From Macrostomum lignano (taxonomy: Eukaryota), in the NCBI GenBank assembly GCA_002269645.1, contig NIVC01001988.1, forward strand, positions 1 to 64,000: 64,000 bases of DNA, given 5' to 3'. The translations under genes were made by a program, and so were the position numbers. A model generated the notes under the pieces. That model saw nothing but the letters and a program-made list of their open reading frames with translations, was not told the origin of the DNA and ran no database searches. This document shows, piece after piece, positions 1-59,230 of this stretch (the first letter of the stretch is position 1; each line of letters starts with the position of its first letter).

Positions 1-1892
1 CTCGGCCGCAATGACGACTCCCCAAGGCTGCTGCGAACCATGCAGAGAAAGAAAGACCTCGCAGTTTGGATGAAAATGGCCGCAACTGAGCGAAGCGCGG
101 AAGTCAAGGACGAAAAGAATCACGTGCAGAGTCACGTGTTTTTATTGGACGTAGCATTCGTAGATCCTTATGCAGTGGACGAGCGAAACTACAACATCGA
201 AGAGCTGTTTCGACACACGGAGACCCTCACTGGTGGCTACAAGATGAGCCGTTGTTTTTACCCATACTTTGTTCCGGAGGACACTATCTCCGGCCCAGTG
301 ATTGTCTATCCAAAGAATGACGTCATAATTGATCGGGGAATCGGAAGCCCGCACGTGCACTGGCTGACGGAGATCTACCTGGTGAATATCTACAAGGCGT
401 CGCTGTACTACTGCATCATTCCTCAAGAGGAGGATTACGGCCAGCTGGAACTCGGTGACGAGATACTGGTGACCCCGCGGTTCGGACAGCTGCTGCATTA
501 CTCGGAGAAGCGAAAGTTCGGTGGCGGTGCCCAGGAGTCAACGATGTCAGATAGCCTCTGCGAGCAGATACAGATCTACCTAAGGTAAATATCTGATAGC
601 TTCAAGCTGCGAAGTCTGTCTGCATATAGCATTGACGGTTTGACACTTTATTTGATATTAAGAAGGCATTAATATAATATTGAGAAAAAGTGGGTTCAAT
701 CTTTTTTCACTTAAACTTAACCAAACTTCAGGTACACACGAACTTGCTTCATGGAGGACGGCCCAATCTTCAAGCTGCACATATTTTTCTTCACTAAATG
801 CAACGCGCCTTCGTGGCTTGCCGATCCTGCAAGTGACGATGTACAGCTGGACATGAGCAACCCGCTTTACCAGAACGCCCTGCACAAAGCCCTCGACGTT
901 GTCACTGTGCGAATTTTCATCAAGGATGCCGAACAGCAAATCACAGCCAAGAACGTGATGACATACGACGACCTTGATGACACTGAGGACGTCTTCCGGC
1001 CGATGAAAGGCGAAGGTGGCCAGCTGCTATGCGATCCGGTTGGCTCGCAGCAGGCCGCTGCGTACATGGCACCTTCGGATGCTTCGTCGCGAGTGGGCAG
1101 CGAATCGCAGAAGACGGCACAAGCACTCAGTGGCACCAGCACGGAAGTCGCCCTGGTACCCGCGACATTTCACTGCGGATAATCGATTCAACGGCTGCCC
1201 GCGGTATTGGCGAGCTGCTGCACCACGCCAGCAGTGCCTGCGAGACCGTGCACTCGTTCAGACAGGCCGCAGATCCTGCTTTGGAGCTCAACTACGACTG
1301 CGACACTCTAGGCATGACATCTTTGTCCTATCAGCCCGACCTAATGACACCCACCAGATCTCTCCGCCTTACTGGAAATCAGCTGCCTCAGAAATATTCC
1401 GCTCAGCAGTTCCAGCAGCAGATTCAGGGACGCGATTCGGACCTGTTCGACAATTCTCGTTTTTCGCTGATATCTGACGATCCACTTCTGCCCCTGCCAC
1501 CGCAGGCGGCCTCAACACAACCTGCCGCTTTGCCGCCGCCTGAAGTACAACAGCAACAACAGCAACAAGAACAACAGCAGCAGCAGCAGCAGCAACAACA
1601 AGAGCAACAACAGCAACAAGAACAACAGCAACAGCTGAATTTGCCGTTGCAGGCGCGGCTTAAGCAAAGGAGGCCATCGCTGCTGCTTGACGTGTCGCCA
1701 CATTCGCAACTGCCTGATCCGATGCCAAGGCCGCCGCAGCCGACGCAGCCAGTTGCGCAGACGCTTTCATTGTCACAGAAGTCGTTGGAGCAGCAACCAC
1801 AGCAGCAGCTGGCCCTGCGCAGCGACTCTCCTCGGGCGTCTAGAAAAGTGTCTGCCGATGTTGACAAAAGCGAGGAACAGGCGGAAGACTAG
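1..1892 (+). CDS. Unknown protein, 5'-partial, with low-complexity polyQ C-terminal region
   Basis: The frame is open from base 1 to AG|GTAAAT at 584. Intron 585-731 ends TTCAG and rejoins in frame (R-YTRTCF-MEDGPIFK, ORF 751-1182). Protein-like sequence continues in ORF 1029-1892 after an apparent -1 shift near 1155-1180. No family recognised. Confidence 0.55.
1548..1636 (+). repeat. CAG/CAA trinucleotide tract encoding polyQ
   Basis: Mixed CAA/CAG run inside ORF 1029-1892. Confidence 0.85.
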
Positions 1893-2614
1893 CAGCAGCA
1901 GCAGCAGCAGGAGCGAGGGCGAAGACAATGAAACGTTATAAAGCAAGCCTGAGACGCTCGTAACTGTAGTCAGTTTCACGTACTGTAGTTAACTGAATGA
2001 AACTTGCTTTTGTGAATTGCTTATTAGTACATGCATAGACACCTGCGTTTTGCTCTGAAACTCGGACGAGAGTTTGAATTTTGATTTTTTAATATTTTTC
2101 GTGGACAGTTTATGCACGAATGTAGCTCCAGCCAGGGTACGCCTTTGTTCTCAATGAAAGCATCTAATAAGCTCAAACTGCAAGTTGCGCATAAACAGGT
2201 CCTGGTCCTTGAATTGTCTCGGAGGAAAAAATCGGCTCAAATAAAGTCAGTAAGGCCTTTTTAACTACTCAAATAGTAGTAGCCGCAGTGACTGCAAATC
2301 GTAAAAAGAAACTACTTGTTTTTCAATGATGGTACCATGTCCTTTTTTTGAAAAATTGGAATAAACTGCAGGGCAAAATAGCAAACGCTAGTTCTGGCTT
2401 AAGCAGAACTGTTAGAGTAAAAGATAGCCAGCAGAAAAACAAACAACGCAGACATGTAGAGAATTGACATACTGGCTGTTTTGTTTTACTGAGGTGAGTG
2501 GTCTGTCGGATTATAAAAGTACATTTACGAGTAAAGAGGGGAGAGAGATAAAACTTCCACCAAACCAAACACTGAGATTTAATCCAGTTATTTTTAACAA
2601 CTCTTCGTCCGGCG

Positions 2615-3071
2615 TCAAGGCGTCGGGGCCAGGAGGGTGACGGAGGCACAGCCGGCCATGCAGACACCGTTGGCGGCGTTGCAGGCCAGGATGGCGGCGG
2701 GCACGGCAGTGCCACCCGTGGAGACCCCGGCAACGCCTCCGGCGGCGGCCACGCAGGCGACCCAGACGGTGTTGCAGCCGGTCTGGCAGACCCCGTAGCT
2801 GGCTACAGCGCCGATAATGCCGGCCTCGGCCTGCAGCTGCGGCCCGCCGATCAGCAGCAAAGCCAGCAGGGCGACTTTGGTGACGAACTGGATAGCTGAA
2901 TCAAAGCGAACGTAATAAAAGCAGTTTATGGTATGCACACTTGTACTACGAGCTAATTTTAAATTCTTAAGCATGGGTTCTTTCTTAGACTTATGAATAA
3001 ACAAGTTCCTAGCGTCCTTTATTAATTATTTGTGTGAGTTTTTAATATAAAATTATAATATACTTACCCAT
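2615..3071 (-). CDS. Small secreted 6-Cys hydrophobic peptide, copy A (resembles the YGICQxGC...ACN...C family annotated as zygote-specific class V / fungal cysteine-rich protein)
   Basis: Exon 1 is ATG G (3071-3068) followed by the donor GTAAGTA. Intron 3067-2896 ends TTCAG; exon 2 is 2895-2615. Product: MAIQFVTKVALLALLLIGGPQLQAEA-GIIGAVASYGVCQTGCNTVWVACVAAAGGVAGVSTGGTAVPAAILACNAANGVCMAGCASVTLLAPTP. It has a signal peptide ending AEA and a paralog at 13.8 kb with the same intron. The family name is from memory, not a search. Confidence 0.85.
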
Positions 3072-3829
3072 TGCAAATTCGCTAGGTGAGATCTGTTGCT
3101 GAACGATTCGTTCGCAATAATCTGACAGCAGACTTAGTGTCGCGAGAACAGGGGGAATTTCTAGCTGAACAGCCCCAACTACTTGTATTTATGGTGGTCC
3201 TTCCCTGCGTACGTACGGCCTGCCATGGGGTGGAGGGGTGGGGGTGGGGGGTTAGACAGGGAAGCGAAAACAGTTTTAACTTGCGTTCCTCTGTGCTTGC
3301 AAAGGGCGTGAGTGCGTCTTCCTCACATGTGAATTTCCAAGAAATCTATTTTTCTTTCTTTCCTGGAAATTCCAATCTAGGCATTTTAGCACGTGCTGGG
3401 TAAGACTTGTCGCTAAATTTTTATTGCGAGTGCGCCTGCACTTGCTCCCCTCTTTTTCTTTCTCTATCTGCCCCTGGGCCCTGTCTAACCATCCACCTTA
3501 TCTTTAATTATTCAATGCCTCGGCCACAAATCAACATGTACGCCATCCTCCGTTCCGCCTGTCTCTTATCTACGTTTGTTCGTTCGTTATTCTGAAAATG
3601 TACGTTCAACCTCCCGCTGTACTTGTCTGGACCCAGTCCCTTCTTATTCAACATGGACGCTGTATTGGGTATGGGGGGTTGGTAGAGTTGGGCTTGGGCT
3701 GTCGTTCTCTCCTTTGTAGCGTACACTATGCAATGCACAAGGCCCAACTTTCCACAACAGGGGGGTTCATAGTCCGCCCATGGGCTTCCTCTCAACTTTC
3801 GGGTACACTCAATGCCACTCACTCTTAAC

Positions 3830-4552
3830 TAGGGATTGCAAATCCCGGCTGTCCCCCGGATCCCGGACTAAGCAATGACTCAATCCGGGATCCCGGACCC
3901 AATCCCGGGATTGACATTTTAAATATTTTTGCCGATAGAAGGCCAGAAAACCCGCTTTTTTAAACGTTTTTTAAAGTAGTAACTTTTCTATTTGATTTTA
4001 CTAAAAAAACGAGAACACAAATGTGTAAAGCAGTAATAGTGTGTAATACATTTTATATTTCTCGACTTGACAGCATTACCGAGTATTCTATTATCTAATA
4101 TATAATGGTTTCTTTTCTTGTTTTGTTATTTTCTACACTTGTAACTTACGAGCTCGTAATCGTAATGCATGCATGCAAAATTATCTCCCAGTCATTTTTC
4201 AATGCTTTTATGTACATAACACAAAGTTACACAACCTCACAAGTTACACAAGTAACACAAGTAGTCAATTACACAAACACAACACAAGTTTGAGACTCGC
4301 ATGTATTGTCTGTATTGTATAATTTGGATTGTATCACGATTCGAGAATCGAGAGTCACGTCACGATCACGACTCATGATCACGACGCGCGAATGTTACTT
4401 GTGTAATGTATTTAAAATACAAAAATTTTGATATTTCCTGGATATCACCCACTTTATAAAAAAAGTTTCCAATCCCGGGATCCCGAGCCCCTAATCCCGG
4501 GATTCCGTCAGGCCAAAAAGTGTCCGGCCGGATCCCGGGATTGCAATCCCTA
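3830..4552. mobile_element. Non-autonomous hAT-type DNA transposon (MITE), 723 bp
   Basis: TIRs TAGGGATTGCAA(A)TCCCGG at both ends. Perfect 8-bp target-site duplication CTCTTAAC at 3822-3829 and 4553-4560. Subterminal CCGGGAT/ATCCCGG repeats and no transposase ORF. Confidence 0.92.
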
Positions 4553-4723
4553 CTCTTAACACCAACCACTCGAGGCTTGTTTTAAATAATCAATCGATAA
4601 AATTAAATGTACACTTGCGGCAAGCTGTGTTTCGATTGTAAAAGAAGGGGAAGAAAGTGGCCAAGGGCACCCCCCCACAAGGCAGGCAGGCCGGCCCGAG
4701 CGCGCAAACGCGGTTCGCCTCGC

Positions 4724-5394
4724 CATCATAAACCCGAAAAATCACAACTCCGAAAGCACTTCCCATCATAAACCCGAAATATCACAAACCCGAAATATCA
4801 CAAACCCGAAATATCACAAACCCGAAATATCACAAACCCGAAATAACACAAACCCGAAATATCACAAACCCGAAATATCACAAACCCGAAATATCACAAA
4901 CCCGAAATATCATAACTCCGAAAAACAAAATAGCAACGCCCATCATAAACCCGAAATACCATAACTCCGAAATTAATAGCAGGGCCCATCATAAACCCGA
5001 AATATCATAAACCCGAAAAATCACAACTCCGAAATTAATAGCAGGGCCCATCATAAACCCGAAAAATCACAACTCCGAAAGCTAAAATAGTGTTGGGCAT
5101 TGCTAGAAATTTTGGAGTTATGATATTTCGAGTTTATGATATTTCGGATTTATGATGGGCGTTGCTATTTTGTTTTTCGGAGCTGTGATTTTTCGGGCTT
5201 ATGATTTTTCGAGTTTATGATGTGCGTTGTTATCAATTTCGGAGTTATGATATTTCGGGTTTGTGATATTTTGGGTTTGTGATATTTCGGGTTTGTGATA
5301 TTTCGGGTTTGTGATATTTCGGGTTTATGATATGATATTTCGGGTTTATGATGGAAAGCGCTTTTCGGAGTTGTGATTTTTCGGGTTTGTGATG
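4724..5394. mobile_element. Foldback-like palindromic element with internal 16-bp tandem repeats
   Basis: The left arm (CATCATAAACCCGAAAAATCACAACTCCGAAAG...(AAACCCGAAATATCAC)n) is the reverse complement of the right arm ending ...TTTTTCGGGTTTGTGATG. There is a short central spacer near 5085-5110. No clean TSD. Confidence 0.7.
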
Positions 5395-5485
5395 CCCCCC
5401 TCGCAAACGCAATGACAAAATAAAATTAGAAAAGTACACTATTTACGCTTCATAGGTCATATACAAAAGTAACGATAATAATAGA

Positions 5486-7219
5486 TAGGGAAATACAATT
5501 CCGTGATCCCGAAATTCCGGGATTAGGGTTTGCAATCCCGGGATCCCGGGATTGCAAATACTCGCCGGGATTTATCGGGATTGATAATCCCGGGATTATC
5601 CATGGACGGGATATGCCGATCCCGACAATCCCGGGATTGACAGAAGACCGGGATTTTGCAATCCCTACCCGGGATTATGCCTGAATCCCAGGATCACACT
5701 TGTCAGGGATTCGAAAATCCCGGGATTGACCATCGGGATCCCGATCCCGGTTTTCAATAATTCAATCATTCATTATCGAGTAGTATAGTATCTGCAGCTG
5801 AGCTACCTGTCAGGTGAAAATCATAAACCCAGTTGGCCTGCTTTTGATTTATTAATCTTTTTAGCATGCAGGCTAGTGAGAAGGCCAGGGCTGCAGGGAT
5901 ACAAAACTGAAGTTGTGGCAGTTCGTAGGAGATTTCGGGTGTAATAATTTACGTGCAACTGTATGCATATGGTACTCGCAGACTATATTATTCTAAAACC
6001 TGTGCACAGAGTCTAGACTCTAAAGCAATAGAAGCCAGTTTCTCATAGTTTCCTATCACAGCGCTATAGCTTGCCAGACGGGTGTCAAATCATTGTTCAT
6101 TTGAACTCTGAGTCTCTAGTAGGGAATACAAAATCCCGAGTTTTGCCCATCCCGGGATTTTCCGAATCGAGATATCCCGGACTTTGAAAATCCCGGGATT
6201 CTCGGGATCGGGATATCCCGGACTTTGCCAATCGCGGGATCCCGACGAATTGGGCCGGGATCCCGGAATTGAAAAAGTTTCTCATCTTTGTTGGTGCAAA
6301 TTTGGCTTTCGAAGCCATCTAACCTGATTTTAATGGGCTTTTAATAATAAAGTAGAAGAGAATAAAATATTTTGCAAACAAGAAACTTACAATGAGCTCT
6401 GAATTGGAGTGTGATGTACGGGCTGGCGTAATGGGCGTGCTTTTTTACATGCCAGTATCAGCTCAGGAAAATCACACTCGATTTTGATGTAACCTGGGGA
6501 ATGATAGCTTACAGCAGAGCTATGACCCGAGGTACTGATAACAAGTTAGAAGGGGATCAGAGTCCAGACTCAGACCTCCCCTCCCGCCCTAGATGGAGAA
6601 TTGCATGGTAGCTTGGGTTATTCGGATAGCAAGGTCCCACTGTTCTAATCCCAACTATACGGCCAAGGAGTTTTAAAGTATCGACTGCTTAAAGTAGTTC
6701 TGTCATCACCCCTTTGCTGCATGCTGGGCAATCTAAAGGGTTTCCTGACAGTGCTGAGAATGAGGTCTGTCGCAAAGGGGGCTTCTGATCTGTACAAGGT
6801 CGAGACCCCTTGATTTTAGCTGCATGGGTTTGAGAAGAGGGAGAGTTCAAATGAACAATAATTTGACTCCCGTTTGGCCAGCGTCATCGCTGCGATCGGA
6901 AACGATGAGGAATTCGCTTCTACATGTATTGCTTTAGGGCTTAGGCTCTGTTCACAGGTTTTTGAATAATAATTACATTAGTCTGCGAGTACCATATGCA
7001 AGACAAGACAAAGCAAGACAAATGGGTGATGATCTTCACGTGACAAATAGCTCAGCTGCAGATACTCTACTACTCGAGAATGATTGATTGAATTACTGCG
7101 AACCGGGATCGGGATCCCGATGGTGCAATCCCGGGATTTTCGAATCCCGGACAATTGTGGGCCTAATGGGCCCAATCCCGGGATTTCGGGATCCCGGGAA
7201 CCCGGGATTGTATTCCCTA
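5486..7219. mobile_element. Nest of hAT-type non-autonomous elements with TAGGGAATAC termini
   Basis: TAGGG(A)AATAC termini at 5486 and 6120, and inverted at 7219. Dense CCGGGAT subterminal repeats. Parts of 5486-6109 are the reverse complement of 6842-7219 (e.g. 6073-6109 vs 6842-6878). Confidence 0.7.
5524..5667. mobile_element. 144-bp mini hAT element nested in another hAT end
   Basis: TIRs TAGGGTTTGCAATCCCGG / TAGGGATTGCAAAATCCCGG. Flanks are TCCGGGAT and CCCGGGAT (7/8 TSD match). Confidence 0.7.
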
Positions 7220-7804
7220 ATAGGTACGGTATTAATGACAGTTTATTTTCGAACAAAAGTAGCTACTTTCAAACCACCAGCACGTAGAGAGTTATTAAAA
7301 TTTCACTGTTTATGAAATTTTATAAAATTTAACACAGAATTTTAGATATTGAAAACTTTAAAAGAAGGGTATTACTGTTGCATCTTGCATGTGACTAAAA
7401 CCGTGGTAATAGGATGGTGAAACTGGTGATTGGTATCTAGCTTCTTTTGATAACTTAGCTGGTTAGACCCCAATATTGTAACGCTGGAGCCAAATACAAT
7501 GGAGCGATTAGTTTCTCTCAAATGTCTCTGCCAGTGCCAGTTTAGTCCATTATAGTAAGTAACCAATAGTTACGAGCTACGACCGAAGGAAGTTGATAGT
7601 GAGGTCCGGGAAACAATTTTGGATGACAAATTTTGATAAAGAATTGCTGTAAAATTTTAGCATTTTTGGTCCCCTGATTTGAGCCAGGTGTCAAAATGCG
7701 TAGAAAAGATGGAATTTTATTATGAAATAACAAAAACGGAAATTCCACTTTTGTACACGAAAAATACCAAAAACCTCTAAAACGGCCCTTTTTCGGTTGT
7801 TACA

Positions 7805-8335
7805 GTCTGCAGCTATTTGCTTTAGATTGCTGCTGCTGTGTGCTGCAGCCTGATGCTGTCTGCTACAAATTGCTGCTGTGTGCTACAGCCTGATGCTGTC
7901 TGCTTCAGATTGCTGCTGTGTGCTGCAGCCTGATGCTGTCTGCTACAGATTGCTGCTGTGTGCTGCAGCCTGATGCTGTCTGCTACAGATTGCTGCAGCC
8001 TGATGCTGTCTGCTACAGATTGCTGCTGTGTGCTGCAGCCTGATGCTGTCTGCTACAGATTGCTGCTGTGTGCTACAGCCTGATGCTGTCTGCTACAGAT
8101 TGCTGCTGTGTGCTGCAGCCTGATGCTGTCTGCTACAGATTGCTGCTGTGTGCTGCAGCCTGATGCTGTCTGCTACAGATTGCTGCTGTGTGCTGCAGCC
8201 TGATGCTGTCTGCTACAGATTGCTGCTGTGTGCTGCAGCCTGATGCTGTCTGCTACAGATTGCTGCTGTGTGCTGCAGCCTGATGCTGTCTGCTACAGAT
8301 TGCTGCTGTGTGCTGCAGCCTGATGCTATCTGCTG
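7805..8335. repeat. 40-bp minisatellite
   Basis: Unit TGCTACAGATTGCTGCTGTGTGCTGCAGCCTGATGCTGTC, about 13 copies. Confidence 0.92.
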
Positions 8336-8539
8336 CTGTCAGCTGCTAGCTGCTTCCTGGTGCCATCTATTCTAGTCCGGCTTCAATAGTTGTCTGCTGC
8401 TTTTTTGCTGTCTTCTGCCTGCTGCCTTCAGCTGCCTTCTGCTGCCATATGGCACTGTCCACTGATGTCTGCTGCTATCTGCTGCTGGGTATTGCTACTG
8501 TATGTGCTACGCAACTGCTTCTGCCGATTCTTGAAAAGT

Positions 8540-8640
8540 GGCACAGCATTGCAGCGTGGCATCACCAAATCGCGCGCGCGCACCTTTGTCAGAAAGAGTC
8601 CGGAGGCGGAAAATGCATACTTTGATTCGCATAAACTGAG
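8540..8640 (-). pseudogene. hAT transposase C-terminal dimerisation-domain relic
   Basis: Reads CESKYAFSASGLFLTKVRAR, then after a shift in a (CG)n run RFGDATL. This resembles the hAT motif SERAFSxAGLFLTKLRSRLxDxTL. A TIR-like end (CCGGGGTTGACATACCTA) lies near 8760-8778. Confidence 0.45.
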
Positions 8641-10488
8641 TTTCAATCGGCTTTCTGTGAATCTTTTTCTTATTTAAATGGCAAAAATTAGGTTACAAAT
8701 CCATTTTTTTAATATTTTTTCTCCCCGGGATCCCCGGTCCAATTCCCAGGGGAGCACTACCCGGGGTTGACATACCTAGTACTCCCGAATGGGAACATAA
8801 GAGTTCGGATACGTTGCCAAGAAGAACCTCCCAGGCTCTGGCTTCTTAACGCAGCTATAAGATAAATGCTTGGAGTTGATTTTAGCTAATTAACAGCTAG
8901 GGATCTTTTGTCATCTTAATTGACCCAATTTCAAGTCTGTGGTTTACGGCAGCTGGCCGGGTGTTTTAATTCCCTGAACACACCCTGCCAGCCGTCTATC
9001 TTCATTATGCAAATGCCAAAATTGAGACAGAACGCCAAGGCTCCGTTCATCCATTAGGGAATGTGATGAAATGGGTGGAATGTGAAGTTTAAGGAATTGG
9101 AAGTTCGCTGTTACGTATACTTCTTCGAAGGCTTTACTCACGACTTTTCGTTTTCATTTTCGAGTGAGCACATTTAATATTTGTCAAGATTTTGGGCTTT
9201 TTGACACTGAGGACACCGAGGATTACCAGCTATATTTACCAGCAGTAGAGTGCCAAGTTCACCCATATTTGATAAGTTTTCTTACTTTCATGCTAGAATC
9301 GACCAAACCCGAACACACGAAACTCAAGGACATCGTTGAACTATCTGTTGCAAACCTTCTGAAACAGCTGTTGCTATTGTTCTTATGGGGGTTGCTATTG
9401 CGCGGATCCCCCATCCTGTCAATGCTGCTTTTGTTCCTTTTGTACCTTCTATGGGTTTGAAGCAGCAAATAAAGAAGTTGTTCCTACATGTCAAATGCAC
9501 TCCTGATGTCTGACGTCCTGTCCTGTCTTGACTCTTAAATTTTATTGATGTTCACTTCACTTCGAGCGGATGTTATTCTTCAGATTAAATTTGCGTGTAC
9601 TTGTTGAGACGTGCATGCTCGACCACTTACATTGGTGTAGTGCTTGGATGAAAAATCTGGCACCTATCTGCAGCCTATTCGAATTTAGCGTCACTACACC
9701 TCCACCCACCCCCCCCCCCTACTTATACTGTATTCTCGCAATTGGATTCAAATCAACTAATTGCAGTGCGAACGCTTTTGATCACTCGTAGAGAATCACT
9801 TAATTGTGTGACAAATTGATGGGATCGTCAAGGATTGCTCGATAGCTAACTGAAACTTTGTGTGAAAGAGCCTTTCAGGACATGAAAACATTGTTAAGCT
9901 GCAGCATTCTGTGAGGACAACTCTAACTCTGCACAATAACTTTACGGTCGTACAACATAGCTTTGGTGGTACTGCTATGCCGCTTTGTGAAGAGTTCGCA
10001 AAATGCTGCTTTGGTTCTCTTTCTCTCTCCCTCTCTCTCCCTTGTTATCTTCCTAGGGACGGGAGACAGACAGAAACTAATGCTGGACGCGCGGTCACTC
10101 CTCAGCAGGGGCAGCCTCCACAACGCTAAAGAAGGGGAATGAGTTGCATATTTTAAATTATTTTTTCCTCCCTTCAAAGCAAAACGTTTGGGAAATCTAT
10201 GTTGCATCCTATCCCCCTTCTCAGTGGCGTAGCCATATGTTTTTCGTAGGATGACCAGGGGGATGGGGGTAGCGAGCCTCTCCAACTGGAGAAGGAAAAT
10301 AGAAATGTTTGATTAAAAAAGCGCAACTGCCACTGGAATTCTCACTCACCTGAATTTGCGGGTCATTACCGCTGCGTCCACCCCGCCACCCCAATGCGAT
10401 CGGGCAAAATGCATAAAGCAGCCAGTATAGCAGCAATAGACGCGCAAGCCTTTTGCCCCGTAGACAGAACTCTGTAGAGCCGCTTATC

Positions 10489-11302
10489 ATGCAGGCCTCA
10501 TTAATTCTGCCGCTTTTCTGCTGCTGCGTCGCCTTCCGCTGCTCCCTTGGCGTCGAATTCAGTCCGTTGGGCTGCTTCGTGGACAGCCCAACTCGAGACA
10601 TAACCGGCCTTGTAGGCAGGTCCACCATCGGGCCCTACTCGGTGAACACGCTGAGTGTCGACCTCAGCAATATGACCCTGGAACTGTGCAGCCGAATCTG
10701 CGCCTATGGAAACTTCAAGTACTTTGCTACTCAGTACTCACGTTCATGTGTCTGTGGGAACTCGTACGGCGGCTTAGGCCAGGCAGCTGACAGCGACTGC
10801 AACATGAACTGTGCTGGAAACCCCGCTCAAATTTGCGGAGGATTTTACAGAAACTCAGTGTACCGGCAGGTCTACCTTCGTCCAGGTGAGTTGCAACACG
10901 GAGACAGCGATTCTGACGCTCTCAAACCTACGGTTAGGGCTAGCGTCTAGCGCTTAACCTGTCATGTATAAAGGTCCCAGCTCGCATAATGATCTGAGAC
11001 ATGTGACCAGTTACCAAGGAGATGATTATAACCCGCGATCATGACTAATTATGGATTGCACTTTCAGCCAGCGGACGCTTCACCTGGGCTGATCGAGTCT
11101 ACCTGAACGTGACCTCCTCCAGCGCGCCTTTCTACCGCACCGTGCAGCCCGTGAGGTGCCTGACCGACTGCATGGTTCGCTGCGGCACCGACTGCCAGGC
11201 CGTGTTGTTCCACCTGGACACCTAGCCTGCCACCTGCTGAGACTGCCCGCTCTGCCGCACGAGCTGGAGTACGTGCCTGGTGAATTCTTCCTTCGCGTCT
11301 GA
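10489..11302 (+). CDS. Secreted WSC-domain protein with C-terminal PAN/Apple-like domain (one apparent frameshift)
   Basis: Signal peptide MQASLILPLFCCC..., then WSC motifs GCFVD, MTLELC...C, YFATQYSRSCVCGN, C...CAGN...CGG..RNSVY. Phase-1 intron 10886-11067. Exon 2 reads CLTDCMVRCGTDCQAVLFHLDT, then after a -1 shift at 11223 ACHLLR...FFLRV* (stop 11300-11302). Confidence 0.78.
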
Positions 11303-12189
11303 GCGATCGGATAAATGAGAGTTGAGGAGACGAGACGAGTCACCGCAAGGACCCTAAAAAAGCAGAATTTGTCAGTTTAACTCTGTGATTAGCGGAACTC
11401 GAAGCGAACCCCTTTTGACTCATTCAATCCTGATTTCATTCTGTGGTTAAGCGCTCTGTCTCAGTACAGAACTCTGATTGTTAACCATTTTTAACTCTGA
11501 TTAAGCGCTCTGTCTCAGTAACAGAACTTTTTAATTGTTAACCATTGTTATTTATGTGATTAAACACCGTCTCTGGAAAAATTAACTTCCCTAAACCTGT
11601 CTGTTTGCTCTGTGATTAAGACCAATCACACAGCAATAACTCATTGATTTCTTTAAGCGTGGAGTGACTCTTTTATTAGGCTCTTCCCTCTTTTTCTTAA
11701 TCTGTCCTGTGTTTTATCGTGTCCAACTTTGCAGAAAGAACTTTTTTCACTAATTAATAAGTTCAAAATTAGTCGACGTGCTTGACAAGCAGTCGCTTTG
11801 TTAGCAAAAAACACATGTTTTGTTATCAGTCGGCAGTGAAACTTTCCACTGATCTCTTTTGAAACAGTCAATCTGTAATTTTTTAGAAAGTGTCTACGTC
11901 TTGATGAAACAAGACCGTCAGGCTACGAAGAGAGTCAGTTGGTTCTAATATATTCAAGCTCGCAATTCGTCAAACTCAACTCCGTACGCCCAGACCCGTG
12001 AAGAGAGAATGGAGGGCACTACGCATGGAGGAGGAACTGGAAAGAGGCAATGAACAGCGAGGTGACGCATCGCGACCTTCCAAAATTGTCCCGAACCCCC
12101 CCCCCCCTATAGCCCCACTTAAACAAGACAATTCTTACTGTAAGATCACGACCACGGAAGGAAACTCTAATTGTCAATAGAACATTGTC

Positions 12190-12850
12190 AAACCAGTCAC
12201 TCCGCCGGCTTGCCTACCTGATCATCTTCAAAGCAACGCTCGCAGAACGTCGAGACAGTTTAAGCCATCACTGTCGCTGGCTTCCACCGGCTTCCATTGG
12301 CAGTCTTTCGCCAGCATGAAGTCACCTGAAGTCACCGACATCGATGTGACAGTCATGAGCATGGACGTTATGCCGTTGGTTCTGCAGAGCTGGCTGCTGC
12401 TGCACCCTGGCTGGCAGGTCCGGTCTAACGCGATCCAGCAGCGAGTGCAGCCTCAGGAGGAACTTAGGTCGTGGCATGGGGCGTCACGCGGCGTAGGTGA
12501 GCAAAAATCGGGCTACTCGCTCGTCCAAGGATTCACTCTTCTGCTTAGCTAGCAACCTTTTGAGCGTCTGGACCGCCCTCTCGCCTGAGCGTTGGACGCC
12601 AGTGGTAGGGCGCCGTCCTTACGTGCCGAATCCTGTTTTTTGACAGAAAGGTCTCCATCTTCTTCCTCATGAAGTTCGGTTCGTTGTTCGATACGATGCT
12701 GCCCATGTGTAGAAAAACTTTGTCGCAGCCTCTGGATGGTTGCGGCTTAAGAAGTCATAGTTATTGCGTGGACATCCATCCACTTTGAGTGCGCATCCAC
12801 AGTGAGTATAGGCGGGACCAATGGCCTGTCTGGCCAAGCTCAAGGATGTT
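12190..12850 (-). mobile_element. Ty3/Gypsy integrase relic (K02A2.6-like), degenerate
   Basis: Across stops and frameshifts the minus strand reads TVDAHSKWMDVH...AATIQRLRQSFSTHG...SNNEPNFM...KNRIRHVRTAPYH...RAVQTLKRLLAK...VARFLLTY..TPHATT, a typical rve core. Confidence 0.82.
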
Positions 12851-13099
12851 TATCTGTCGAATGTAGATAGTATAGAGTAGAAAAGTGTAAAAAGAAAATT
12901 ATTAATTAAAGTTTCTGAAGCTCTAAATTGTCTCGATCTATTGAGACTATCCACTCTCACTCTCACACAGCAACAAATACTAGCAACTACGAGGTGCCAA
13001 CCAACCAACCAATTGCCAAGTCTATCCATTGAGCAATTTGAAAAACGAAAACGAAAATCCTGACAGACTTAGTTTCCACTCGGGTGACAGCAGCGGCTT

Positions 13100-13236
13100 T
13101 AAAAAGACGCCACGCGAAGCGAGGCATCTAACGGAAACTAGCGCAGTATAATAAATTAGTTCTGGGCTCAATTATGTTCATATTATAACACTTTTTGTAA
13201 TCATAACAAAAATTTGTCCCGGGATTGCAATCCCTA
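13100..13236. mobile_element. hAT MITE end, same family as 3830-4552 TIR
   Basis: Ends CCGGGATTGCAATCCCTA. The subterminal ~110 bp aligns to 54838-54959. Confidence 0.65.
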
Positions 13237-13389
13237 TACGGCACATTGTCAGTTGCTGAGTGCGTAGTACGCGCACGAATAGAAAAAGCTACCGGGTGGA
13301 CTGTGAATCGAAGTTTCTCTTAAAAACAACTGGCTATTTACTCACAATCAGGTACAATCAGGTGCACGGGCCCAGGTTTTCCCTGTTTC

Positions 13390-13550
13390 AGTTTTTCGTA
13401 TTTCATTTTCGTTTTTCGTTTTTCATTTTCGTTTTTCGTTTTTCATTTTCGTTTTTCGTATTTCATTTTCGTTTTTCGTTTTTCATTTTCGTTTTTCGTT
13501 TTTCATTTTCGTTTTTCGTTTTCCATTTTAGGTTCTTCGTTTTCATTTTA
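13390..13550. repeat. Simple repeat (TTTTCG/TTTTCA)n
   Basis: Iterated TTTTCGTTTTTCATTTTCG units. Confidence 0.8.
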
Positions 13551-13843
13551 GTTTTCGATTTGGCTATTTGAAAATTTAAATCAGAGAGTCTTGGACACTT
13601 TGCTTTATTTTTTCCAGACAACGATTAGATAATATTCTATACAGTGTGTCTTGAGCCACAGCTCACAGTGATTGGTGGTAGCTGGTAAAAAAAACCTATA
13701 CATTTAAAAGCTAGGAGCTAGTATAGAGGTCAGCAGCAATTTTATAAATACGCGTCTCTCTTTTCAACTCTTCCCACACGACAAAGCCTTCTCTAGATTT
13801 CCAAGCCAATTCTAATCCCAGCAGAATTCTTAATTCATACGCT

Positions 13844-14207
13844 ATGGGTGAGTACAGTTAATACAGTTTAAAGTACACGCATTAACGCCCTGCCGATAAC
13901 TATAACCATTTTCACTGTTAATTCAGCCACCAGCTTTGCCACCGCTGCTGTGCTGACCGTGTCGCTGCTGCTGACCTGCGGGCCGCTGCTGCAGGCCGAG
14001 GCGGGGCTCTTTGGCGCCTTGTTCGGCTACGGGATCTGCCAGACCGGCTGCAACACCGTCTGGGTCGCCTGCGTGGCCGCCGCCGGAGGCGTTGCCGGGG
14101 TCTCCACGGGCGGCACGGCCGTGCCCGCCGCCATCCTGGCCTGCAACGCCGCCCAAGGAGTCTGCATGGCCGCCTGCGCCTCCGTCACCATTGCAGGTCC
14201 AGTTTAA
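13844..14207 (+). CDS. Small secreted 6-Cys hydrophobic peptide, copy B
   Basis: Exon 1 is ATG G (13844-13847) followed by GTGAGTA. Intron 13848-13926 ends TTCAG; exon 2 is 13927-14207. Product: MATSFATAAVLTVSLLLTCGPLLQAEA-GLFGALFGYGICQTGCNTVWVACVAAAGGVAGVSTGGTAVPAAILACNAAQGVCMAACASVTIAGPV. TATAAATA lies at about 13743. Confidence 0.87.
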
Positions 14208-14788
14208 TTGGCGGCACTGGATTTGATGCATGCCGGATGAACTCTGTCGGAGGTCATCTGTCTGCGGTCATTAATTCAAATGGTTCCTCTGCACCTGGCG
14301 TCTGTTTCTCGTTTTCTTCGAAAGCCATTGCTTTTTCTGAAAGTTTCTGTCCGTTTCAAGATCAATATTTTTATATCCCTTCGACACACAAGGACTACTC
14401 AAGTAACATATATATACATGTAGGACGCTACACTCGAAATCTGTGGTAAATGTTTTGAAGGAAACTTTTCGCTGAAAAATACACTACAGAGATAGGAGGT
14501 TTTAATTTTTTCAGCACAAAAATTGTTTTTGCTTTTGATAGGAGACAGATCCAGTGTTCATCTTTTAATGTTGTGCCTTTCTTATTGCTCTATCAATATT
14601 CATAAAGCTTTTCGTTCAGAAATAGTTTTAAAGGCAGGTTTCACCGGAAAAATACACTACGGAGATAGGAAATTTCACGATCACATTATTTTGTGCCTCA
14701 CATGCTGCTCTAACGACGCATTAATCGATTTTTCATGTTAAATTGGTCTTGTCATTATTTTAAACGTTTTTTTCAAGTGCGAAGTACG

Positions 14789-14909
14789 GTTGCAGGGATC
14801 TCCATTGGCCCAGCAGTCGTTCCTCCCGCCATCCTGGCCTGCAATGCCGCCAAAGGAGCCTGCATGGCCGGCTGTGCCTCCCATCACCATCCTGGCCCCA
14901 ACGCCTTAG
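14789..14909 (+). pseudogene. 3' fragment of a third 6-Cys peptide gene
   Basis: VAGISIGPAVVPPAILACNAAKGACMAGCAS, then a +1 insertion, then ITILAPTP*. The 5' half is absent. Confidence 0.8.
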
Positions 14910-17529
14910 CGCTGGACGATGAGCTGTTAAAAATAACTGGAGTGAAGAAACGATTTTTTGCCAGATAGATTATTTTTTAAAAAGGATGTACCCACCATCA
15001 TTAAAAAACAAGTAGTTTCTTTAGTTCTTTCAGTCACTACCACTACTACTATTGGAGTAGTTAAAAAGGCCTTACTGACTAAGGGCTGCGGGCATCCCAC
15101 CGCAACGCGAAATCGTCTTACAGCCATCGGTGACGCAATTCTGCACAGCGTACAGCGGCCCTAACTTTCTATCCGTCAAGCAAGTACATAAACTCACTAC
15201 ATGTATGCCTTTGGGGGCTTGGCCTCATGGGGTGTGAATCGAACAGAGGAGATGCCGCGAGAGTAGGAAACGTAATTACCATTGAGCTACTCGGAAGCAC
15301 GAAGGCAGCTCTCTAAAAATCGAAGGCAGATCAGATTTTTAAGCTGTCGCAGTAAACTGCGGAAATTCCACTTGTGACAGCGAGACAACCAGACAGGGTG
15401 TGCTGCTATTGGCTGCTGCTCGTTGCTCTTAATTGGTGATGTAGATCCAGGGAGTCTGCAGTGCCCGGAGAGGGCATTTCACCGATGTTAATCAGGCGCT
15501 ATTGCGGGGTAAAGCGGATAGGTGTTCGTAGATAGGACGGTCTCCGTGCCGGAGAGAGCTGCACGTACAGTATAACATGCAGGCCAGTAATGGAAAAAGG
15601 GAATTAGAGGGATTGGACCGCGGGGGGGGGCAGGCGCCCTTTGTTAAGGAGCGGGCACGCCGCCGCCCCTAAATCGTAATCAAAGCTTCTGTTGCAACTA
15701 TGAATGGATCATCATCACACTTAAATTAATTATAATTGGATTAAGGGGTAGAATAATTTTGCGATACTTCATCGGTCTCTTTCTCAAGTTTCTTTCCTTC
15801 TACTTAAGTCTTAAGACCTCTTAGATGATTTCATTACATGACAAATTGTTTTTTGTTTCGTTACCTATTGATAAAACAAAGCTTCTAAAGAATGCATCTA
15901 GCATGTGAAGCAGTACACCTCATGAGGCGATAGTCTTTATTAAAAAAAGTTTTTTTGTTTTTTAATTTAAATATTTTATTTAAATTCTTAATTAATTAGC
16001 AGTTACTTTTTAAGCTGTTATTTTTATTTTAGTTGTTAAAACGATTGCTTCTATAGCAACGGCACGCTAGAACACAAAAAATACAATTGCAAATTAATTT
16101 TAACCATTAAATTCTGTACCCTTCTACAAAGCTCTTTACTGTACTTCCCTCTCATGCTTAAGAGAAATAAAAGCCTTAGCTTTGATTTATTATTTTACTA
16201 AATTCCTTCTGAAGCAATAATGAAGACTATGTTACAGTCTGCTGAAAATCAAATTTATCGTTTTCATAATAATAAATCTCCGTTTAGATTACATTCAAAA
16301 TTTATTGACATCAAGTATGTTAGAAACTAGCTTCATTAATACCTAAAATCTGCAAAGAAAGGATCATTTAATATTTTATTTTAAATAGTTATTTATATAA
16401 ATAGCCTATTCATTGCCACCTAAATTAGTATGGAGTTAAATGTGCCCACTAATACATACTATTTTCTGTTAATATAATACATATTCGTGTAAAAACTGTA
16501 TTTATAATCGCCTTAGTTTGTATTGATTTTATTAAATTATATTTATTTTGTACAGAGAGACAGACAGAGAGAGAGAGAAAGCAGTTCAGGTATCAACAAG
16601 ATCAACCTCTAATTTCTTGGTTGACAATCTAGTTATCAAATGAATATTATAATATTTAGCATCTTATGGGTAAATTGTTCATTTGAGTTTTCAAATTATT
16701 TTTATTTTAAATAATTGCCTTTGCAGTGCAGTCAAATAAGTTTCTGGGTAAATTGGGCTTTATTAAAACATTTATTTTGCCAGAAACAGTTTTAATAACA
16801 CTCCATAGTGCTCCATATTTGTTTTGCCATTTTTTCAAATGAGTAATACAAAAATCACTCTAAGCAGTTAAAATTAAAATTAAGCAGCTGCTAAGTATGC
16901 CCTGTGTTTTTATGGCTGTTTTCGATTTCTAAAGTCAAAATAATTCATTGGTTCATTTTTATTCAAAATATTTACAATTTTTTCAGTGAAAACATTGTGT
17001 AAACTAGAGTTATTATAATTTTATAAAGACTTTTTTTATGTATATAATATATATTTTATAGTTTAAAGATTGTCCGGGACTTTATTTGTATTTTCTAGGA
17101 TTTTATTTAATTTTTAATAATCCTGTAAAATCTTTATGCCTATGTTTTATCTGAGATTAAGCGTGACTTTTCGGGCCCTCGTGATTTATACAAATAACTC
17201 CCTCAAAAGGAATGTTAGCAGGTTGATCTGGACAGACAAAAACTCTTAGACAATTTAACAGATATTGCCTCAATATGCAGAACTCGTCAATTGTTAAGTT
17301 CGAGAAGTTTTAATAAAAAACCTGAGATCTCTTTGTTTAAGTAAAATCGAGCTACAGCTATTTTTAGAACAGCTATACTCGTAAGTATAGTTTTCTCCAT
17401 AGACGAGCTCACGCAGTTATGAGTTATTTTAAGCTCAACTTTGCGGAACCAAATAAACAGTCGATGAGCTGAGAACTTTCCGAACGCTCACACGCGATGC
17501 AACAAAAAACTTGTTAATTTAACCCGGCG

Positions 17530-17888
17530 ATGCCCCGTCCGTTGCAGCGCAAGCAGATGAAAAGTGGCGGCAACCGCAGCAAGAAGGTGAAGGTCTGGGT
17601 TCGAGTCCGGCCCAGCCAGAACTTTGCCGACGACGCCATCAAGCTGGACCCGGAGGGCCGGTCGCTGCAGATCAGCGTGCCGCGGCCGGCGGCGACCAGC
17701 AGCCGCAGCAGCGCGGCTTCGCCAACAACCAGCGCTCCGACTGGTCCTTCCGCACCGACGGCATCTTCTCCAACTCCTCGCAGCAGGAGGTCTACGAGAC
17801 TGTGGGGGCCGACCTCATCGAAAGCGGCTTGGCCGGCTACAACGGCACCATCATGTGCTACGGCCAGACCGGAGCGGGTGAGCTGAGC

Positions 17889-17981
<93 letters not shown>

Positions 17982-18013
17982 GGCTGTCTGTCTGTCTGCC
18001 TGCCTGCCTGTCC

Positions 18014-18059
<46 letters not shown>

Positions 18060-18060
18060 G

Positions 18061-18098
<38 letters not shown>

Positions 18099-18108
18099 CC
18101 TGTCTGCC

Positions 18109-18149
<41 letters not shown>

Positions 18150-21100
18150 TAGTGAATCTGCAAAGCTGCTTGCCAATGCTCAAAGATCGCTCTCGTGCGT
18201 GGTGTTTCAGGCAAAACTTTCACCATCACGGGTGCCACCGAGATGTTCCACAATCGCGGTCTGGTGCCCAGGGCGCTGAGCCATCTGTACAAGGAGATCG
18301 AGGCCAAGTCCGACCTGGCCATCACGGTGCGCATTACCTACTTGGAGATCTACAACGACACCATGCTGGACCTGCTGGCCACCATGCCTGACAGCCAGGA
18401 GGCCGGCAGCCCGCTGGTCATCACCGAGGAGAATGGCGGCGTCTACGTCAAAGGCCTGAATGTCCACCTGGCGCAATCGGAGGAGGAGGCGCTGAACCTG
18501 CTGTTTGAGGTGATTAGGCGGGCTGCGCATCTGGATCTGAGTTCTGATTAGGCTGTTTGTGCATTTGAGGCAGCAGAGTAGCTTAGCGGCATCTGGATCT
18601 GAGTTCTGATTAGGCTGTTTGTGCATTTGAGGCAGCAGAGTAGCTTAGCGGCATCTGGATCTGAGTTCTGATTAGGCTGTTTGTGCATTTGAGGCAGCAG
18701 AGTAGCTTAGCGGCATCTGGATCTGAGTTCTGATTAGGCTGTTTGTGCATTTGAGGCAGCAGAGTAGCTTAGCGGCCACGACCCCTGGTTCAATTCCGTG
18801 TGTTCCAAAGTTGACCAAGGGTTAGCCGTTCGAGTCTCACCAATGAGGACCAGCTCCCAAGGCACACAGAGTGAACATGCCTGACGATTAGAAAGTCAGG
18901 GGCCGATGACCATATACATGTATACATGTAGGTTGCGAAAGCACTCAGACCCCAGATTTAGGGGATGGGTGACCATTTTTGCACTGCGCATTAGAGGGGC
19001 ATCTAGGCAGGTTAGTGAGGCTGGTGACCGAGCCACTGTCAGCATCATAAAGTAAAATAAGAATCTTCGCCCAGTAGCCCTACTGTCGCCATTGAAAAAC
19101 CCGCACCGCAGGGCGAGACTAACCGCGCCACGGCTGCTCACGCGCTGAACAAGAACTCTTCCAGGTCGCACACGATTTTCACCGTCTACCTGGAGACCCG
19201 GTCCCGGTTCCAGTCCAATTCCAAGTACACAACGTCCAAGATTAACTTCGTAGATCTGGCCGGATCCGAGAGGCTGCAGAAAACCCTGAGCACGGGAAAG
19301 ACTCAGCAGGAGGCCTCCTACATCAACAAGTCGCTGTCGTTTCTCGAGCAGACAGTCATCGCGCTGACGGAGAAGAACCGCGACCACGTGCCTTACAGGC
19401 AGAGCAAGCTGACACACTACCTGAAGGACAGCATCGGCGGCGGCTGCAAGACCATCCTCATCGCCAACATCTGGGGCGACGTCAGGCAGCTTGACGAAAC
19501 TGTGAGTTCCTGGACACTCTTTGATGAGCCGCCATTGGTGCAGTATTAGACTGGACACTCTTTGATGAGCCGCCATTGATACAGTATTAGACTGGAAACT
19601 CTTTGATGAGCCGCCATTGATACAGTATTAGACTGGACACTCTTTGATGAGCCGCCATTGGTGCAGTATTAGACTGGAAACTCTTTGATGAGCCGCCATT
19701 GGTGCAGTATTAGACTGGAAACTCTTTGATGAGCCGCCATTGATACAGTATTAGACTGGAAACTCTTTGATGAGCCGCCATTGATACAGTATTAGACTGG
19801 AAACTCTTTGATGAGCCGCCATTGGTGCAGTATTAGACTGGACACTCTTTGATGAGCCGCCATTGGTGCAGTATTAGACTGGAAACTCTTTGATGAGCCG
19901 CCATTGGTGCAGTATTAGACTGGAAACTCTTTGATGAGCCGCCATTGATACAGTATTAGACTGGAAACTCTTTGATGAGCCGCCATTGGTGCAGTATTAG
20001 ATTGGAAACTCTTTGATGAGCCGCCATTGGTGCAGTATTAGACTGGAAACTCTTTGATGAGCCGCCATTGGTGCAGTATTAGACTGGAAACTCTTTGATG
20101 AGCCGCCATTGATACAGTATTAGACTGGAAACTCTTTGATGAGCCGCCATTGGTGCAGTATTAGACTGGAAACTCTTTGATGAGCCGCCATTGGTGCAGT
20201 ATTAGACTGGAAACTCTTTGATGAGCCGCCATTGATACAGTATTAGACTGGAAACTCTTTGATGAGCCGCCATTGGTGCAGTATTAGACTGGAAACTCTT
20301 TGATGAGCCGCCATTGGTGCAGTATTAGACTGGACACTCTTTGATGAGCCGCCATTGGTGCAGTATTAGACTGGAAACTCTTTGATGAGCCGCCATTGGT
20401 GCAGTATTAGACTGGAAACTCTTTGATGAGCCGCCATTGGTGCAGTATTAGACTGGAAACTCTTTGATGAGCCGCCATTGGTGCAGTATTAGACTGGAAA
20501 CTCTTTGATGAGCCGCCATTGGTGCAGTATTAGACTGGAAACTCTTTGATGAGCCGCCATTGGTGCAGTATTAGACTGGAAACTCTTTGATGAGCCGCCA
20601 TTGGTGCAGTATTAGACTGGAAATAAACCAAAACCTTCAACGCATTTAACGATCACCAATGAGCACCCACCTGTTCCTCCTGCTTTCGGAGGCTGCGTCA
20701 ATGGAATGGGCGAAATTGGCTCGCCAGTTGTGGGACAATGTCTCCAAAGGCCCAGGGTGCCCGAAAGCCCACGGTCTGCGCATTTCATCTTCAATACCTC
20801 CCCCCCCCCGATCTGCCTGCAGGTTTCCACAATGCGATTCGCTCAACGAATGAGCTGCGTTGCCAGCGAGCCGGTGGAGAACCAGCGCACCGATCCCAGC
20901 GTGAGCAGCGGTTTTTGCTTTGGGCGATTTTAAATAGCTGAGCAATTTTTGTCATATTCAGCGATTTTCAGCGAATTTTTATTCAGGGCGTTAGAATCGT
21001 GTGATTCTGGGGGTAGAATCGTGAGATTCTGGGGGTAGAATCGTGTGATTCTGGGGGTAAGAATCGTGTGATTCTGGGGGTAGAATCGTGAGATTCTGGG

Positions 21101-58227: not shown

Positions 58228-59230
58228 TGAATGGCGACTCTTGAGGAGTGAATGGCGACTCTTGAGGAGTGAATGGCGATTCATGAGGGGTGAATGGCGA
58301 TTCTTGAGGAGTGAACGGCGATTCTTGAGGAGTGAATGGCGATTCCTGAGAAGTGAATGGCGATTATTAAGGAGTGAATGGCGATTCCTGAGAAGTGAAT
58401 GGCGATTCTTGTGGAGTGAATGGCGACTCTTGAGGAGTGAATGGCGATTCCTGAGAAGTGAATGGCGATTATTGAGGAGTGAATGGCGATTCCTGAGAAG
58501 TGAAAGGCGATTCATGAGAAGTGAATGGCGATTCTTGTGGAGTGAATGGCGATTCCTGAGAAGTGAATGGCGACTCTTGAGGAGTGAATGGCGATTCCTG
58601 AGAAGTGAATGGCGATTATTGAGGAGTGAATGGCGATTCCTGAGAAGTGAATGGCGATTCTTGTGGAGTGAATGGCGATTATTGTGGAGTGAATGGCGAT
58701 TCCTGAGAAGTGAATGGCGATTCATGAGAAGTGAATGGCGATTCTTGTGGAGTGAATGGCGATTCTTGTGGAGTGAATGGCGATTCCTGAGAAGTGAATG
58801 GCGACTCTTGAGGAGTGAATGGCGATTCCTGAGAAGTGAATGGCGATTATTGAGGAGTGAATGGCGATTCCTGAGAAGTGAATGGCGACTCTTGAGGAGT
58901 GAATGGCGATTCCTGAGAAGTGAATGGCGATTATTGAGGAGTGAATGGCGATTCCTGAGAAGTGAATGGCGACTCTTGAGGAGTGAATGGCGATTCCTGA
59001 GAAGTGAATGGCGATTATTGAGGAGTGAATGGCGATTCCTGAGAAGTGAATGGCGATTCTTGTGGAGTGAATGGCGATTATTTTGGAGTGAATGGCGATT
59101 ATTGTGGAGTGAATGGCGATTCCTGAGAAGTGAATGGCGATTCTTGAGTAGTGAATGGCGATTTTTGAGGAGTGAATGGCGATTCTAGAGGAGTGAATGG
59201 CGATTAATGAGGAGTGAATGGCGATTCTTG
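58228..59230. repeat. 21-bp minisatellite
   Basis: Unit GAGTGAATGGCGATTCCTGA(G/A). Confidence 0.93.

Follow-up and report, generated by a model that had tools for sequence, protein, structure and literature searches.

Two native Macrostomum lignano genes for charge-free, six-cysteine peptides of a conserved, uncharacterized family

Two genes and a pseudogene at the locus

We analyzed a 64,000-nucleotide stretch of the genome of the flatworm Macrostomum lignano (assembly GCA_002269645.1, contig NIVC01001988.1, positions 1 to 64,000; hereafter the window) that contains two intact two-exon genes for small, cysteine-rich peptides. Gene A is on the minus strand (2615-3071), gene B is on the plus strand (13844-14207), and each encodes a precursor of 94 amino acids (aa). 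An earlier note on this DNA had described these two genes, each with a signal peptide and a charge-free mature peptide of ~68 aa with palindromic cysteine spacing, and a decayed fragment of a third copy. We reproduced both genes at the same positions by reading each strand and by splicing with a script, and we found the other features as described below. We also found that genes A and B are ordinary members of a family that is already labeled in databases and is uncharacterized.

The two genes have the same structure. Exon 1 of gene A, as read from the sequence, consists of the start codon and one additional nucleotide (ATGG; 3068-3071, minus strand, with the ATG at 3071). A 5' untranslated region (UTR) extends upstream to at least ~3167 in the deposited model P0001. 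The gene A intron (2896-3067) is 172 nt long, interrupts the frame in phase 1, has the ends GTAAGT..TTCAG and 28.5% GC, and its junction matches that of P0001. Exon 2 (2615-2895), spliced by script, contains codons 2-94 and a TGA stop, and the 68-aa mature peptide is encoded by 2821-2618. In gene B, exon 1 (13844-13847, plus strand, also from sequence reading) is again ATGG, and a phase-1 intron of 79 nt (GTGAGT..TTCAG; 13848-13926) is at the same position as the intron of gene A. Exon 2 of gene B (13927-14207) contains codons 2-94 and a TAA stop, with the 67-aa mature peptide encoded by 14004-14204 (protein P0121). The minus-strand sequence ATAAATA at 3186-3192 is a TATA-like element 121 nt before the ATG of gene A, and the plus-strand sequence TATAAA at 13743-13748 is a TATA box that precedes the ATG of gene B by 101 nt; both are motif matches only.

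The gene A precursor consists of a signal peptide, MAIQFVTKVALLALLLIGGPQLQAEA, followed by the mature peptide, GIIGAVASYGVCQTGCNTVWVACVAAAGGVAGVSTGGTAVPAAILACNAANGVCMAGCASVTLLAPTP. The gene B precursor consists of the signal peptide MATSFATAAVLTVSLLLTCGPLLQAEA followed by the mature peptide GLFGALFGYGICQTGCNTVWVACVAAAGGVAGVSTGGTAVPAAILACNAAQGVCMAACASVTIAGPV. Signal peptides and cleavage were judged by inspection, from a hydrophobic N-terminus and an A-x-A/G site (the slash marks cleavage); relatives repeat ..xEA/G and ..AHS/G. Cleavage is predicted at ..LQAEA/G, giving mature peptides of 68 aa (gene A) and 67 aa (gene B). The mature peptides contain only A, G, V, C, T, I, L, S, N, P, Y, Q, W, and M, with F also present in that of gene B, and neither has a single K, R, H, D, or E.

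The cysteine spacing C-x3-C-x6-C-x23-C-x6-C-x3-C is exact in both gene products, with 10 residues after the sixth cysteine (C6) in gene A and 9 in gene B. The same spacing, including x23, was present in 119 of the 120 highest-ranking relatives listed from the databases, so this arrangement is not due to chance.

Both products correspond to deposited M. lignano proteins. The gene A protein is 100% identical over 94 aa to P0001 (BOX15_Mlig004286g2), and the gene B protein is 99% identical to A0A267GIT5 ('Zygote-specific protein'). P0001 is encoded on a second genomic copy of the locus (L008, below); its model runs through the 5'UTR and has the same splice junction as gene A. Judging from how the M. 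lignano genome was annotated, P0001 is probably a transcript-derived model.

The third copy lies downstream of gene B. What is left of an A-type coding sequence is its 3' third, codons ~56-94, which together with an A-like 3'UTR occupies 14789-14941 (plus strand), with 82.7% DNA identity to 2734-2583. Continued A-type 3' flanking sequence is at 14994-15080 (plus strand), with 86.5% identity to 2333-2245. The fragment, which had been placed at 14789-14909, is real, and its homology to gene A runs on to 14941. It has no signal peptide, no helix 1, and none of the three cysteines of that helix. A 1-bp insertion shifts the frame (..CAS/HHHPGP.., with the slash at the shift), and the original stop codon is at 14907-14909. 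This third copy is a dead duplicate, 5'-truncated and frameshifted. A tblastn search of the window found no further gene copies.

Genes A and B are arranged head to head, with 10.8 kb between them. Their DNA can be aligned within exon 2 only (89.7% identity over 224 bp), and their introns and flanks are unalignable. In the region encoding the hairpin core (aa 35-86) there are three non-synonymous and four synonymous differences, and the signal peptides differ at many positions.

The neighborhood (window positions 1-25247) is present in two M. lignano assembly copies that are 94-99.7% identical, so each type, A and B, is represented by at least two genes in the genome. Contig NIVC01002501.1 (L008) matches window positions 1-8514 at 95-99% identity and encodes an identical gene A protein. 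Contig NIVC01000299.1 (L006) matches positions 6172-25247 at 94-99.7% identity; its gene B product differs by one residue, and the pseudogene fragment is also there. Because L006 carries both gene B and the fragment, the arrangement of gene B plus fragment is older than the split between the haplotypes or homeologues. M. lignano is known to have undergone genome duplication, and the two copies of the neighborhood either stem from it or are haplotypes.

The family and the origin of the flatworm genes

We collected relatives of the two proteins with a word-indexed search and then with an exhaustive profile search of sequences clustered at 50% identity. The word-indexed search yielded 216 relatives. 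The profile search yielded 529 clusters at E <= 1e-3 and 134 at E <= 1e-10. The six-cysteine pattern C-x3-C-x6-C-x(19-24)-C-x6-C-x3-C was found in 337 of the 393 proteins retrieved, and E-values against the M. lignano entries were 1e-31 to 1e-48.

The family includes both fungi and animals. UniRef applies the label 'Zygote-specific protein' to the M. lignano protein and to many relatives from Pezizomycotina (Aspergillus, Penicillium, Pyrenophora, Venturia, Fusarium, Bipolaris, and others), in agreement with the family assignment made previously. Members are also found in a basidiomycete (Scleroderma) and in Mucoromycota, and the animal-type profile matches fungal members (e.g., Venturia P0235 at 2.3e-11). 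Named animal members are Nematostella vectensis XP_032218746.2 and the copepod Neocalanus flemingeri, in which one transcript encodes two hairpins in tandem. We take an additional model, 'Seg2693.2 GoldUCD', to be from Aurelia. A search with the alga-like, tail-bearing protein P0201 gave five matches, none informatively named. The earlier note had placed the motif mostly in fungi, oomycetes, and algae. Its abundance in fungi holds, but that description was incomplete, as there is a large animal clade.

Literature searches found no paper that characterizes the function of the family, and its earlier description as functionally uncharacterized stands. The family name presumably goes back to a zygote transcript of Chlamydomonas, 'class V copy B', whose product would be a putative relative. 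We dropped an identification of the Chlamydomonas 'class V' product with ZYS1, a different, nuclear protein: ZYS1A/B are putative transcription factors found in the nucleus (PMC4889651). A Rhizopus homologue, RO3G_14304, is an incidental entry in a secretome table (PMC8977774). In Daphnia magna, 12 h of acute hypoxia raises the expression of a gene bearing the family name, matched by name only (PMC9548574).

Neither protein matched any Pfam model above the gathering score (including hydrophobins, CFEM, saposin, LNR, and other cysteine-rich domains). The sole trace was to Notch/LNR (E 1.5, 9.8 bits vs. a cut-off of 21.2). Searches of the PDB with a single sequence and with a profile gave nothing relevant (one chance match to a VHH at E 0.26) and no solved structure for the family. 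Motif scans of 185,579 GTDB species genomes and of IMG/VR gave pattern matches only, with no confirmed prokaryotic or viral relatives. The family looks eukaryote-only.

The genes of Macrostomum might have been acquired recently by horizontal transfer from a fungus, oomycete, or alga, as the earlier note had suggested. Such a transfer would fit the distribution of the family, which is scattered among named animals and common in fungi, and its apparent mobility, given an ascomycete-type copy among nematode genes in Aphelenchoides besseyi. We clustered 339 domains by average linkage. The Macrostomum copies did not group with fungal or alga-like sequences. They fell in an animal-type cluster of 126 members (mean pairwise identity of 81%) in which all named members are animal, together with cnidarian sequences; the copepod sequence joins this cluster at a looser cut. 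A separate Pezizomycotina cluster contains 129 members and has an x22 loop. The flatworm domains are 73-78% identical to the Nematostella and probable Aurelia sequences and 82-85% identical to two further relatives. Identity to ascomycete, basidiomycete, or alga-like members is 52-60%.

The two groups can also be told apart by eye. The animal-type clade has the x23 loop and a V-A-A-A-G-G-V-A-G-V-S-T-G-G core, whereas Pezizomycotina members have the x22 loop and F-T-W-G-A-T-L-G. The 'Zygote-specific protein' members, fungal and animal, have in common with genes A and B the six-cysteine layout, the signal peptide, the charge-free Ala/Gly-rich hairpin, and a ..PTP C-terminus.

Codon usage in the flatworm genes is host-like. 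The GC content at third codon positions (GC3) is 0.853 in genes A and B, compared with 0.87 and 0.80 in two neighboring genes of the window, one SLC3A2-like and one Fes1-like. A preference for GCC, GGC, and GTC is common to genes A and B and these neighbors. Also against a recent transfer, the intron is common to both paralogs while their flanks have diverged past alignment, and the locus, including the pseudogene, exists in two diverged genomic copies. Based on the placement in the animal-type clade, the host-like codon usage, and the common intron position, recent horizontal acquisition by Macrostomum is not supported, and we consider it very improbable. Genes A and B are native, anciently duplicated family members in M. 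lignano. The patchy spread of the family among named animals may reflect either an ancient transfer into early animals or many losses.

Aphelenchoides besseyi is a fungivorous nematode. Its ascomycete-type member (JAMPIP010000001.1; L009 8001-8319, and the same in L010) has the x22 loop, is 78% identical to Pezizomycotina P0190, and contains two short, nematode-style GT..AG introns. The copy is flanked by genes for a Roller-3/ROS1-like kinase, RMC1, and symplekin, on ~18-Mb scaffolds in two assemblies. Fungus-to-nematode horizontal transfer is a credible origin for this copy. The transfer story for the flatworm is thus corrected, and A. besseyi is the better-supported candidate.

In Nematostella vectensis, three tandem, same-strand, single-exon copies are present within ~15 kb (OW051985.1; L011 5946-6086, 17261-17401, and 20977-21117). 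The RefSeq protein XP_032218746.2 (153 aa over 9.4 kb) appears to join upstream exons to one of these copies.

The window contains several other genes. An open reading frame (ORF) or exon encoding a WSC domain (carbohydrate-binding, cysteine-rich; Pfam E 4.7e-17) is located between genes A and B (10453-10950, plus strand). A KIF9-like kinesin gene (814 aa in the assembly annotation) starts at ~17550 on the plus strand, ~3.3 kb beyond gene B, and extends across a minisatellite-rich stretch. Three more ORFs, all on the plus strand, match a rhodopsin-family seven-transmembrane receptor (29968-31002; Pfam 7tm_1, E 3.4e-10), an SLC3A2/4F2hc-like amino-acid-transporter heavy chain with SLC3A2_N and alpha-amylase domains (49651-51654), and a Fes1/HspBP1-like nucleotide-exchange factor (55112-56191). 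The last two are long ORFs and served as the codon reference.

The window is also rich in repeats. Microsatellite arrays of (GACA)n/(TGTC)n are at 31217-37609, 42374-43454, and 17888-18149; the largest, with ~1,600 copies over 6.4 kb, is essentially T-free on the plus strand. Minisatellites (41-mer x27, 23-mer x89, 19-mer x89, 21-mer x48, AG-rich arrays, and others) are at 19510-20623, 20981-22993, 46542-48251, 58228-59231, 40730-41871, and many other positions. They are the source of most of the long ORFs in the ORF list for the window.

Predicted structure and conservation of the hairpin

We predicted the structure with AlphaFold2, using an alignment of 50 sequences. The mean confidence score (pLDDT) was 81.8, with values of about 86-94 per 10-residue block across residues 31-90. 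The model is a helix (residues 27-61), a turn (62-65; G62-A65), and a second helix (66-89), consistent with the helical hairpin proposed in the earlier note. The three cysteines of helix 1 (38, 42, and 49; i, i+4, i+11) are on one face, and the three of helix 2 (73, 80, and 84) are on one face. The positions of C38 and C84, of C42 and C80, and of C49 and C73 each sum to 122. This is the register of antiparallel helices in line with each other, and it makes three nested disulfides geometrically natural. We infer that the disulfides are probably C38-C84, C42-C80, and C49-C73; the register fits the nested order C1-C6, C2-C5, C3-C4 that had been suggested from the spacing. In comparisons with known structures, the nearest PDB shapes were ATP-synthase c subunits (TM 0.52-0.60, E about 5). 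Other near shapes were the membrane-inserting hairpins of the alpha-pore-forming toxins AhlB, SmhB, and MakA. None of these matches was significant.

Twin-Cx3C and twin-Cx9C proteins (small Tims and CHCH proteins) and plant alpha-hairpinins (C-x3-C..C-x3-C) are helical hairpins with in-register cysteines and nested disulfides. The likeness is in the antiparallel hairpin and, as predicted here, in its nested disulfides. Unlike the family described here, these proteins have two disulfides, other spacing, and charged soluble surfaces; the Tims and CHCH proteins, moreover, lack a signal peptide and reside in the mitochondrial intermembrane space. Pfam and PDB searches found no sequence similarity of the family to twin-Cx3C, twin-Cx9C, or alpha-hairpinin proteins. 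Saposin-like proteins (NK-lysin, amoebapore, surfactant protein B) are small, secreted, lipid-interacting, and helical, with nested C1-C6, C2-C5, C3-C4 disulfides like those predicted here. They differ in having four to five helices, different cysteine spacing, and charged surfaces, and neither flatworm protein matched Pfam SapB.

We found that the absence of charge is a property of the family. Of 339 domains, 293 (86%) have no charged residue between C1 and C6. The mean hydropathy (GRAVY) is 1.05 for the domains and 1.19 and 1.26 for the mature peptides of genes A and B, respectively. In the animal clade, 22 of 62 positions are near-invariant, and the signal peptides diverge freely beside a slowly evolving mature peptide. 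Entropies, in bits for helix 1/helix 2, are 0.56/0.75 for the cysteine face (without the cysteines), 0.21/0.69 for the flanks, and 0.59/0.76 for the back. The back faces contain the invariant G54-x3-G58, which is an outward-facing GxxxG, as well as the invariant G78. The C-terminus is exactly 9 residues past C6 in 258 of 337 members and is usually ..PTP.

These measurements bear on the possibility that the peptide is a secreted, membrane-active effector (an antimicrobial, toxin, or surfactant) that inserts into foreign membranes. The earlier note had raised these three functions, and also that of a gamete-surface peptide. In favor of an effector, the peptide is small, hydrophobic, and probably disulfide-stabilized and has a signal peptide; the genes duplicate in tandem (three copies in Nematostella; two and a pseudogene here), and the fold weakly resembles the hairpins with which AhlB, SmhB, and MakA insert into membranes. 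However, host-defense and toxin peptides are normally fast-diverging and usually cationic. The peptide described here is neutral, and it is conserved on all faces, with 73-78% identity between flatworm and cnidarians and an average of 81% in the animal clade. It is found equally in fungi and in membrane-tethered forms. The slow evolution and the neutrality argue against a host-defense or toxin peptide, and we consider an effector function quite unlikely.

The membrane-tethered forms are a second architecture. Animal and fungal members carry signal peptides throughout. In 14 relatives that have none, the hairpin is at the extreme N-terminus and is followed by a Gly/Ala-rich linker and then a transmembrane segment (Kyte-Doolittle 1.7-2.3). 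Aromatic and basic residues come next (WFYRRYR, YKWWRA, FWYKLRSR), sometimes with a long acidic tail after them. Proteins with this architecture include P0154, P0164, P0201, P0206, P0220, P0244, P0251, P0254, P0263, P0272, and P0273. Pfam searches with the tails found nothing. Given the basic flank and the positive-inside rule, the ends of the hairpin would be exoplasmic, in the same compartment as in the forms with a signal peptide.

The hairpin might itself span the membrane. As an integral two-pass micro-protein, it would, once the signal peptide is removed, have its two ends on the exoplasmic side and its S-T-G-G turn in the cytosol, and it would form a glycine-zipper oligomer that acts as a channel or a regulatory proteolipid. 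The helices (24-27 residues each) and the uncharged peptide would allow this, G54xxxG58 is on the outer face, and the signal-peptide-less relatives, with their third hydrophobic segment, could have an N-out three-pass topology. By TM-score, the structures most like the hairpin are c-ring subunits. Like the family, the c subunit of F-ATP synthase is a helical hairpin of ~70-80 aa that is Gly/Ala-rich and has GxxxG-type packing faces. Unlike the family, c subunits have no signal peptide and no cysteine ladder, have an essential carboxylate, and have higher hydropathy, and the fold match to them is non-significant. The hydropathy of the hairpin arms is only 0.9-1.5 (19-residue Kyte-Doolittle windows), under the usual transmembrane threshold, and each arm contains N, T, S, G, and P. 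In contrast, the added segment of the tail-bearing relatives reaches 1.7-2.3, suggesting that anchoring in the membrane is not the task of the hairpin itself. A C49-C73 disulfide deep in the bilayer would be unusual, and Pfam and PDB searches showed no homology to any proteolipid family. The moderate hydropathy counts somewhat against a genuine two-pass membrane protein, which we consider unlikely.

A proposed role for the hairpin

We favor the notion, with roughly even confidence, that the peptide is a self-associating or partner-binding uncharged hairpin with a conserved role at an exoplasmic membrane or extracellular surface. The 94-aa precursor would be cut at ..AEA/G in the endoplasmic reticulum. 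The resulting Ala/Gly/Val-rich peptide of 67-68 aa would fold as an antiparallel two-helix hairpin, in which the three cysteines of each helix would face each other and form a nested disulfide ladder that acts as a rigid staple. The hairpin would then pack tightly on its own copies or on a conserved partner, at the exoplasmic leaflet or an extracellular surface, with the outward GxxxG as a packing face. The peptide would thus serve as a building block, akin to a proteolipid or a coat component, in a cellular or protective role that is conserved.

One argument for this notion is that the hairpin has nearly no interior, and all of its faces are apolar and conserved. It therefore must be buried against something and would not work as a free monomer. 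The proposed function is otherwise inferred from the sequences and the structural model.

Several points weigh against the proposed packing at a membrane or surface. The disulfide pairing is deduced geometrically from the register of the helices. A Foldseek search found no match at E <= 0.001 in the PDB (best E 1.8) or in BFVD (best E 0.85). Because the hydropathy of the arms is below the transmembrane threshold, true membrane insertion is uncertain, and Ala/Gly-rich helices can be soluble. The deposited spliced model is the sole basis for taking the genes to be transcribed in M. lignano. The only hints of physiology are weak: the zygote name is inherited, and the hypoxia induction in Daphnia is that of a name-only match.

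A broader possibility, which we put forward tentatively, is that the peptides represent an ancient and hitherto unrecognized eukaryotic class of disulfide-stapled, charge-free proteolipid. Members of such a class might self-assemble through the outward GxxxG to form a pore in a membrane, a ring, or a lattice on a surface. Their conserved role would be protective or developmental, as the links to the zygote and to hypoxia hint. Fungi, algae, and animals that branch early or live in water would have kept the class, and most bilaterian model organisms would have lost it.

The interest is in the family as a deeply conserved unknown, and not in any peculiarity of this locus. We found no Pfam model, structure, or published function for a family that has a ~62-residue core with six invariant cysteines, is uncharged in 86% of its members, is ~75-80% identical between cnidarians and a flatworm, and is present in hundreds of fungi. 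Genetic work is feasible in both M. lignano and Nematostella, which makes the function of the family directly testable.

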